A stretch of DNA of 64,000 nt. Origin: Octopus sinensis. Taxonomy: Eukaryota. Position 1 is the stretch's first letter. Each line of letters begins with the position of its first letter. A model generated the notes under the pieces. It made no database searches. It had not been told where the DNA came from and saw only the letters and a program-made list of their open reading frames with translations. A program made the translations under genes and the position numbers. The DNA lies in NCBI RefSeq assembly GCF_006345805.1, contig NW_021835963.1, positions 1-64,000 on the forward strand, given 5' to 3'. Positions 29,538-31,165 of this stretch are shown piece by piece.

Positions 29538-30318
29538 GATGTGAGATGGTTAAATAGAGGTAAATATTTGATTTTGAAATAAGCAATTATTATGCGAAAC
29601 GAAGAGATAAGGTATATGGAGGAAAATAAGAGAATGAAAGTAGAAATAAAATATATAATATTGTAATGGCAGTTCCACAATTCGAGTAAAGTGGTGTATG
29701 GAAGTGGTAAAAAAAGTTTCATGGTATGCAAGTTCCAATAGTAGTTCATGTTTAATCATTTCAAAGTATGGAGCCATGGATTCTGCTCATTCGAAGCTGT
29801 TTGTGGTATGAATAAAAATTTAAGCATGTATTGGTACAATTTGAGGATTGATGGAGGGGATGTGTATGACTAGAAAGAGGAGATAGGTCAAAATGAAGAC
29901 AGGAAGAGAAAATGTAAGGAAGAAAGAGAGAAAAATAGAGAAAAAAGAAAAAGGACAAAAATAATAAAAAGATATAAAAAGAGAAGAGTGAAAAGAATGG
30001 TAAAAAAAGTGAGTGAGAAAAGGAGTGTTAGTTGGTGGTCTAGATAATGTGAGGGGAGATTGGGAGAGGGAGGAGTGAGGGAGGGTTAGACAGGAAAAGA
30101 TGAGAAGGTAAAGAGTGAATAAATGTGAGATATGTGAGTAGGGGTGATATGATTGGGCTACATTAAGGAATGGGTAGAGAAAAGGTATGGGTAGCGGTGA
30201 TACCAAAGTGAGTTGTAGTTTTCGTAGTAAAATTTAAAGTGGAGGTAAGAATACAAGGATGTCAAGTTTCTATAAATAGACGTATGCGATATTTACTTCT
30301 ATTTAACCATCTCACATT

Positions 30319-30366
30319 GTCTCTGATAAAGGGATATCCATAACATCCCAGAAACAGTTGTAGGAC
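30319..30366 (+). ncRNA. Minimal hammerhead with G8A core lesion
   Basis: GUCU CUGAUAA AGGGAUAU-CCAUA-ACAUCCCA GAAAC AGUU GUA GGAC. Confidence 0.65.
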
Positions 30367-30427
30367 TATATCAATATCGCTTTCCTTATAAATGTCCTGA
30401 AAACTCCTCACAGCCTTGACTTTGTTG

Positions 30428-30498
<71 letters not shown>

Positions 30499-30677
30499 GG
30501 AGTAAACACATAAATGTGAATCAAGGTGGAAAAAAGAGTACTCAAATACCAGTGGTAGAGTAATATGGTTTTATTTAAAGCAGCAGAAAATTCAACAAAA
30601 CCTGTTACTCTGAGTTTCACGTTCCCGTACGCCGGGCAGTTTTTGCTATACTAGAACCGGTTCTATTCTAGCAAAAA

Positions 30678-30715
30678 CTGTCCGACGAACGGGAACGTGA
30701 AACTCAGAGTAACAG
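30678..30715 (+). ncRNA. Second-family minimal hammerhead (CCGACGA core); mirror copy at 30602-30639 (minus) with mutated core
   Basis: CUGU CCGACGA ACG-GGAA-CGU GAAAC UCAGA GUA ACAG. Confidence 0.6.
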
Positions 30716-30758
30716 GTTTTGTTGAATTTTCTGCTGCTTTAAATAAAAGTATATATAT

Positions 30759-30805
<47 letters not shown>

Positions 30806-30865
30806 TATATATATGTATGTATTTGTATGTATGTATGTATGTATGTATGTATGTATGTATGTATG

Positions 30866-30896
<31 letters not shown>

Positions 30897-31165
30897 GTAT
30901 GTATGTATATATGTATGTATGTATGTATGCATATATTAGAAAAAATGAGATAACAAAGCCAAGGCTGTGAGGAGTTCTCAGGACATTTATAAGGAAAGAG
31001 ATATTGATATAGTCTTACAGCTGTTTCTGGGATGTTATGGATATCCCTTTATCCCTGTGAGATGGTTAAGTAGTGGTAAATATCGCATACGTCTATTTAT
31101 AGAAACTTGACATCCTTGTATTCTTACCTCCACTTTAAATTTAAATATTAATAACTGTTTTCGAA

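Follow-up and report, generated by a model that had tools for sequence, protein, structure and literature searches.

The SLC22-like gene and its 3' end

The 64-kb window analysed here (the whole stretch of 64,000 nucleotides from contig NW_021835963.1, positions 1 to 64,000, in which all coordinates below are given) carries on its minus strand an SLC22-like gene, and directly 3' of the stop codon of this gene lies a 913-bp near-palindrome (30230–31142), the subject of this study. The exon-like open reading frames (ORFs) of the gene run from 57327 down to 31166. They match the Octopus sinensis 'solute carrier family 22 member 7-like' protein (P0001; 86% identity) and SLC22A21 of O. bimaculoides (P0002), both of which contain Sugar_tr and MFS_1 domains. 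The last exon starts after an AG acceptor near 31377 and ends with a TGA stop codon at 31168–31166 on the minus strand, as assigned by translation and by homology to these two proteins; a protein search with this exon gave no match in the word-indexed database. Between the stop codon and the right arm of the palindrome there is a spacer of 23 nt (31143–31165, minus strand), which contains no poly(A) signal. The initial annotation of the locus had placed a fold-back at this distance from the stop codon, and the self-BLAST coordinates together with the position of the TGA codon confirm it.

The first canonical AATAAA on the minus strand 3' of the stop codon is found at 30575–30570, at the base of the inner stem of the palindrome, where it had been placed before. 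Upstream of it there are only weak variants on this strand, namely UAUAAA starting at 31101 and 30991 and AAUACA at 31122. The signals that follow it are AUUAAA at 29756 and AAUAAA at 29115. Just downstream of the AAUAAA, the minus-strand sequence of a 72-nt piece of the palindrome (see below) offers CA dinucleotides and a U-rich stretch.

Anatomy of the near-palindrome

Self-BLAST aligned the outer arms of the palindrome, 30230–30433 on the plus strand and the reverse complement of 31142–30945, with 91.7% identity over 204 columns (E = 6e-82); about 500 nt separate them. Each arm consists of two parts. The outer 59 nt, located at 30230–30288 (plus strand) in the left arm and 31084–31142 (minus strand) in the right, are identical after reverse complementation, and are unrelated to the repeat family described in the next section. 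The inner 145 nt of each arm constitute a member of that family: the left arm holds the 3' 145 nt of a hammerhead-like repeat (30289–30433, plus strand), and the right arm holds its 3' part with a deletion of 6–7 nt (30945–31083, minus strand). Global alignment of the arms revealed 10 substitutions, the deletion itself (CATTGTCTCTGAT on the left, CA--G----GGAT on the right) and, at the junction with the microsatellite, eight extra nucleotides (TTTTTTCT) that have been retained in the right arm; these figures agree with the roughly ten substitutions and 7-nt deletion given in the initial annotation.

The inner palindrome has no spacer. Its arms (30569–30658 and 30659–30748) are exactly 90 nt long and meet at the centre GAACC/GGTTC. 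Pairing is perfect over the outer 60 nt of each arm, and the five mismatches all fall closer to the centre, at distances of 7, 9, 22, 26 and 29 nt from it. On the left, the interval from the outer to the inner arm contains a (TA)32 microsatellite (30432–30496, or 30434–30496 when counted from the end of the arm) followed by the 72-nt piece (30497–30568), which has no mirror image. The right side contains a (TA)n/(TATG)n tract (30750–30936) which, with the 8–9-nt terminus of the repeat family (TTTTTTCTA), fills the interval 30749–30944; the same terminus is retained by the family copy at 29423–29745. The AT content of the palindrome is 70%, versus 66% for the window. Mirror symmetry ends after about 450 bp, the flanks are unique, and the window contains no N. 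The two components described earlier, outer arms of about 200 bp and an inner spacerless 90-bp palindrome, are thus both present. The nested fold-back is real, but it is not fully symmetrical, owing to the 72-nt piece, and its arms are derived from a transposon.

The repeat family and its hammerhead-like motif

Other copies of the family lie at 29423–29745, 50745–51034 and 63451–63731, all on the minus strand. The first of these, hereafter the 29490 copy, is full-length and carries a hammerhead-like motif with an intact core at 29538–29490; since it is inverted relative to the left arm of the palindrome, it could act as a competing pairing partner in a transcript that read through far enough. 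The family motif, GTCTCTGATGA...GAAACAGYTGTAAGAC, has two exact matches in the window (29537–29490 and 50845–50798) versus none expected. Its layout is GUCU-CUGAUGA-A-(helix II)-N-GAAAC-AGCU-GUA/AGAC, with a helix I of 4 bp (GUCU/AGAC), a helix II of 5–7 bp showing one G-C to G.U change, and a loop 3 made of the palindromic AGCU. There is an extra A after A9 and an additional nucleotide before G12; the copies are too few for covariation.

The core was judged by the positions C3 U4 G5 A6 N7 G8 A9, G12 A13 A14, A15.1-U16.1 and H17. It is complete at 29538–29490 and 50846–50798 (both minus strand; CTGATGA), and carries a U4C change at 63547–63499 (minus strand; CCGATGA). In both arms of the palindrome, the motif of the left one being at 30318–30366, the catalytic core is broken: they read CTGATAA (G8A), and the deletion in the right arm has also removed C3, U4 and the 5' strand of helix I. 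The presence of derived changes such as G8A in both arms and their absence from the 29490 copy had been pointed out in the initial annotation, and the alignments bear this out. The motif is named hammerhead-like because of the extra nucleotide before G12 and because no Rfam hammerhead model matched at the gathering score (whole window), at E = 1 (28500–32000) or even at E = 10 (intact copy). Rfam microRNA families gave sub-threshold matches only, which were driven by microsatellites.

Minimal hammerheads located in the terminal repeats of Penelope-like elements (PLEs) combine a helix I of 4 bp with a helix II of 5–7 bp, an extra nucleotide after A9 and a palindromic loop 3 (PMC4209133). PLEs are also reported to show an insertion bias towards (TA)n, inverted 5'-truncated copies, and complex tandem and inverted units (PMC8557442). 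On sequence features the present family resembles the repeats of PLEs or retrozymes. In every copy the 3' end adjoins a microsatellite. The tandem arrangement of retrozymes was not observed, all five copies being single and either dispersed or inverted. Furthermore, a composite consisting of the hammerhead-like element, a microsatellite and a segment of about 375 nt, here termed X, occurs at 28848–29745 and again at 62862–63731 with 75–80% identity. Since this composite recurs with its internal microsatellite, the latter belongs inside a larger repeat and is more than just a tail or target.

Adjoining the 29490 copy, and on the opposite strand, is an ORF of 124 amino acids (28404–28778, plus strand) with 943 database relatives, the matching part being C-terminal in the long ones. 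Two of the relatives have sub-threshold domain matches, P0103 to RVT_1 upstream of the matching part and P0134 to GIY-YIG within it. The ORF itself has no match in Pfam, and none in the word-indexed protein database either. Judging from these relatives, it is probably the remnant of a PLE endonuclease.

Several other repeats were encountered in the window. Short interspersed repeats of a kind abundant in octopus are present in many copies (e.g. 50289–50723, 4612–4864, 17741–17972 and 53366–53596). One which starts with GGCGCGGGAGTGGCTGTGTGGTAAG adjoins the family copy at 50745, and copies of the short interspersed repeat are also present at O. sinensis and O. bimaculoides loci with 80–93% identity. 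Two retrotransposon-like ORFs, 44070–45599 and 23866–24150 (both plus strand), show weak Pfam matches to zf-RVT and to endonuclease/reverse-transcriptase domains; they lie in an SLC22 intron and downstream of the gene, respectively.

Origin of the palindrome

The 5' truncation point is common to the two arms, as are the unrelated 59 nt and derived states (G8A, for instance) lacking in the other copies of the family, from which it follows that the arms have been copied from each other. A multiple alignment made with MAFFT had put the outer 59 nt on the 5' end of the family, as if the arms were complete elements; shuffled sequences score as well or better, and in this test the 59 nt show no similarity to the 5' region of the family. 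When the 10 differences between the outer arms were polarised with the 29490 copy, each arm proved to have received about half of the derived changes, which is the outcome expected if the two copies have aged independently. The outer arms differ at 10 of 197 positions (5.1%) and the inner arms at 5 of 89 (5.6%; Fisher p = 1). The best reading, given the common truncation point, the 59 nt and G8A together with the equal divergence of outer and inner arms, is a single fold-back duplication, and on balance we regard the structure as a lineage-specific, transposon-derived near-palindrome which probably arose in one such local inverted event. This agrees with the initial annotation, which had proposed an old local inverted duplication instead of a read artefact; the evenly split substitutions (about 5%), the diverged microsatellites, and the truncation point and 59 nt common to both arms speak for that view.

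No further copy of the 59 nt, the 72-nt piece or the inner arm was found in the window, in the O. sinensis comparison locus L001 (30 kb) or in a further octopus locus, L002 (37 kb), and a 22-mer from the inner arm gave no match in a metagenome scan. A target-site duplication was sought at the outer edges of the palindrome and is absent: ...GTAGTAA on one flank and AAATATT... on the other have only AA in common.

Under the fold-back reading, about 430 bp would have been duplicated, comprising the unique 59 nt, a repeat of PLE or retrozyme type with a catalytically dead hammerhead and a truncated 5' end, the (TA)n tract of this repeat and some 160 nt on the far side of that tract, and the two copies would have been joined head-on at 30658/30659. 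Each arm would afterwards have acquired about 2.5% substitutions, the microsatellites of the two sides would have drifted apart, and a single indel would account for the loss of the 72-nt piece from one side or its gain on the other. As a consequence of this drift and of the indel, what may be a single palindrome looks nested.

Three considerations weigh against this scenario. The 72-nt piece breaks the mirror symmetry, and an additional event is needed to account for it. The arms differ in patches, in a manner that conflicts with a simple clock: the outer 67 nt of the outer arms (30230–30296 / 31076–31142) and, in the inner arms, the outer 60 nt (30569–30628 / 30689–30748) are free of substitutions (post hoc P about 0.014 and about 0.001, respectively), which may indicate gene conversion or, alternatively, mutation concentrated near the centre of the palindrome. 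If gene conversion has taken place, the age estimate given below is unreliable. Finally, the search for copies covered about 130 kb of octopus DNA, which leaves room for a dispersed family of 204-nt units or of inner palindromes.

Age and synteny

The locus was compared with O. sinensis contig VCDQ01001855.1 (L001). In the orthologous blocks 5.7% of the sites differ between the window and L001, a value close to the 5.2% found between the arms of the palindrome. The duplication would on this basis be about as old as the split from the O. sinensis lineage, with the proviso that gene conversion may have reset some of its sequence. For O. bimaculoides, the locus of P0002 was also considered, and was set aside as a paralogue without synteny.

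Over the gene and the region upstream of it, the two sequences are colinear in a single orientation (window 62603..31195, L001 1474..20604). Synteny stops at 31195 and resumes, inverted, at 26371, the breakpoint being placed no finer than this interval; six downstream blocks (window 8160–26371, L001 22652–26772) are colinear in the opposite orientation and extend over 18 kb here versus 4 kb in L001. The palindrome therefore appears to be situated in a junction zone that reflects either an inversion or a wrongly oriented segment in one of the assemblies. No counterpart of 26371–31195 exists anywhere in L001, so that an empty site could not be identified in O. sinensis. The O. sinensis gene has a stop codon of its own, after which a (GT)n tract and then unrelated sequence are found. 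The last-exon reading frame is about 10 codons longer in the window (31166–31200, compared with L001 20575–20606) than in O. sinensis, where it ends in RSNEEN and a stop codon; the C-terminus and the stop codon are thus not conserved. As far as this comparison goes, the palindrome is not a conserved element of the 3' untranslated region (UTR).

Folding potential and possible fate in RNA

The palindrome is predicted to form extremely stable structures. The minus-strand RNA (941 nt) folds at -523.8 kcal/mol, as against -170.9 ± 7.6 for shuffled sequences (z = -47); the inner hairpin RNA alone gives -136.1 versus -37.0 ± 4.0, and the plus strand folded as DNA gives -330.7 kcal/mol. Folds so far below those of the shuffles exclude chance. 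In the predicted fold of a transcript cut after the AAUAAA at 30575–30570 the right outer arm is unpaired and the 90-bp inner hairpin is complete. In that of a longer transcript the outer arms are paired as well and the whole nested structure is present, so that a read-through transcript would form an interrupted duplex of more than 400 bp. The earlier suggestion that the poly(A) site would set the extent of a long duplex is consistent with these models.

Nine of the differences between the arms are transitions. In the sense (minus-strand) RNA they yield three G.U pairs and six A.C mismatches, and in the antisense RNA six of the nine are G.U; this pattern gives no sign of selection for pairing in the sense RNA. 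Moreover, inverted pairs (60 nt or longer, no more than 5 kb apart) are common here, eight being present in the 64-kb window (about one per 8 kb), several of them in SLC22 introns. The initial annotation had pointed out that RNA duplexes are heavily edited by ADAR in coleoid cephalopods, and this is documented for octopus, which is reported to show the highest hyper-editing signal among animals and an exceptionally high potential for long double-stranded RNA (dsRNA), mostly from neighbouring inverted repeats (PMC5625713). Given this background, the frequency of inverted pairs in the window and the lack of any sign of selection for pairing, the most likely outcome, if the palindrome is transcribed, is that ADAR would bind and edit it promiscuously as a passive consequence of its structure, in the manner of inverted Alu pairs (PMC4378195) and of the many further inverted repeats in octopus.

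Further inverted pairs are located at 34326–34981, 37281–37835, 48369–49713, 8803–11134 and 11674–14758 and have arms of 76–198 nt with 77–91% identity. Three of them lie inside SLC22 introns, where dsRNA could form in the pre-mRNA.

Alternative explanations

The enzyme that did the copying might have been a polymerase of replication or repair, or else a reverse transcriptase of PLE type; the inverted structure could in the latter case have arisen during retrotransposition by template switching. Points that agree with this are the (TA)n bias, the inverted 5'-truncated copies and the complex inverted units of PLEs (PMC8557442), the hammerhead motifs in their terminal repeats (PMC4209133), the endonuclease-like remnant at 28404–28778, the recurrence of the composite of repeat, microsatellite and X at 62862–63731, and the placement of the left arm head-to-head with the full-length 29490 copy, an arrangement described in PLE units. 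In the described arrangement, however, the units are head-to-head with their 5' ends facing, whereas the arms of the palindrome are tail-to-tail, and the mirrored segment includes 59 nt foreign to the family; both features tell mildly against a reverse transcriptase. A similarity of the 72-nt piece and inner arm to the X part would, if real, favour it, but this is only suggestive (p = 0.0015 against shuffles and 0.035 against genomic controls) and is not significant in nhmmer. We consider an origin by retrotransposition doubtful on this evidence. Rather less probable is a structure assembled without any local duplication, whether from two 204-nt mobile units inserted in opposite directions into one (TA)n tract with a palindromic miniature inverted-repeat transposable element (MITE) between them, or as a 913-bp foldback-type transposon. 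Members of the family are always found beside microsatellites, a (TA)n tract is self-complementary so that insertion in either orientation is plausible, and the block formed by the 72 nt and the 180-nt palindrome has TA repeats on both flanks; yet a second 59-nt part, 72-nt piece or inner palindrome was not found in about 130 kb or in the metagenome scan, the outer edges lack a target-site duplication, and the equal divergence of the inner and outer arms would be a coincidence. An artefact, for instance a long read that is a fold-back chimera or an assembly mis-joined at an inverted repeat, is scarcely credible: spacerless palindromes are typical of fold-back chimeras, and the orientation of synteny with O. 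sinensis flips beside this one, but the arms differ by 15 substitutions and several indels, have different microsatellites and the 72-nt asymmetry, and the symmetry stops after about 450 bp at unique flanks in a window without N.

As to function, the initial annotation envisaged a 3'-UTR element in which the choice of poly(A) site sets the dsRNA load of the SLC22 mRNA and thereby tunes ADAR editing, nuclear retention or the production of endogenous small interfering RNAs (endo-siRNAs). Its attraction lies in the position of the palindrome 23 nt after the stop codon with no canonical signal before it, in the first AAUAAA at the base of the inner stem with the CA and U-rich run following in the 72-nt piece, in the extreme stability of the predicted folds, and in the precedents of inverted Alu pairs in mammalian 3' UTRs (PMC4378195) and of hyper-editing in octopus (PMC5625713). 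The wobble pattern points the other way, however, with sense G.U at three of nine transition sites versus six of nine in the antisense; O. sinensis has no counterpart 3' of its stop codon, inverted pairs are common in the window, and the weak UAUAAA signals at 31101 and 30991 could end the mRNA earlier. Such an element seems unlikely, and a selected regulatory role is no easier to credit. Because the wobble shows no selection, the structure is absent from O. sinensis and similar pairs are common, we consider the palindrome a candidate editing substrate of a common kind only. An even bolder reading, which we rate as very improbable, comprises an editing-gated 3'-end switch and, separately, an inversion triggered by the palindrome. 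The sole canonical poly(A) signal could be locked in the base of the 90-bp hairpin, its downstream element lying in the 72-nt piece, and unwinding by ADAR or cleavage by Dicer could set the end of the SLC22 mRNA and the amount exported, a switch originating from a dead ribozyme repeat. The palindrome itself may have triggered the inversion that separates the species of the window from O. sinensis, by analogy with the translocations at human palindromic AT-rich repeats (PATRRs).

A striking structure is in this way mainly explained away: under the single-duplication reading, repeat turnover produced it as a young by-product confined to this lineage; it is one among many inverted pairs here, and it belongs to a known class common in octopus genomes. 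It illustrates PLE-type, microsatellite-associated repeats seeding palindromes at the ends of genes and at rearrangement breakpoints. If it is part of the transcript, a 90-bp hairpin nested in a 200-bp duplex would be a clean natural substrate for ADAR or Dicer in a cephalopod 3' UTR, and such a one-step product of a transposon remnant could be used to ask how octopus treats UTR duplexes, by editing, retention or cleavage.

Comparison with known systems

MITEs and foldback transposons are flanked by target-site duplications, which the palindrome lacks, and a fold-back artefact would have identical arms and a symmetry extending into the flanks, neither of which is seen here. The hairpin RNA (hpRNA) loci of Drosophila, which give rise to endo-siRNAs, are long near-perfect inverted repeats serving as Dicer substrates. 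The palindrome is likewise a long near-perfect inverted repeat and, if transcribed, a possible substrate of Dicer; its putative 3'-UTR location is untypical of such loci.

With the hammerheads of PLEs and retrozymes the family has in common the core CUGAUGA...GAAA, a UA cleavage site, a helix I of 4 bp and the association with microsatellites. It differs in having no match to the Rfam hammerhead models and in its extra nucleotide before G12, which creates an A.A or A.G pair at 10.1/11.1; its copies are dispersed where those of retrozymes are tandem, and both arms of the palindrome are dead, through G8A and, in the right arm, the deletion.

Inverted Alu pairs (IRAlus) in 3' UTRs, for which nuclear retention has been described (PMC4378195), offer a parallel in that two opposite repeats of retroelement type lie within 1 kb directly after a stop codon, and the fold predicted for them is a long intramolecular duplex. 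The arms of the palindrome differ in being duplicates of each other and not independent insertions, in including 59 nt of non-repeat DNA, and in enclosing a spacerless 90-bp hairpin; moreover, an mRNA ending at the AAUAAA at 30575–30570 would omit the left outer arm.

A further comparison is with the PATRRs of human chromosomes 11, 17 and 22, whose properties have been described (PMC1851657, PMC4940405). The palindrome differs from them in being moderately AT-rich (70%) and built from a transposon-derived repeat. Like them, it extends over several hundred bp as a nearly perfect palindrome with AT-rich tracts and no spacer; the DNA hairpin predicted for it is strong, its mismatches are clustered near the centre, and it is positioned at the edge of a break in synteny.

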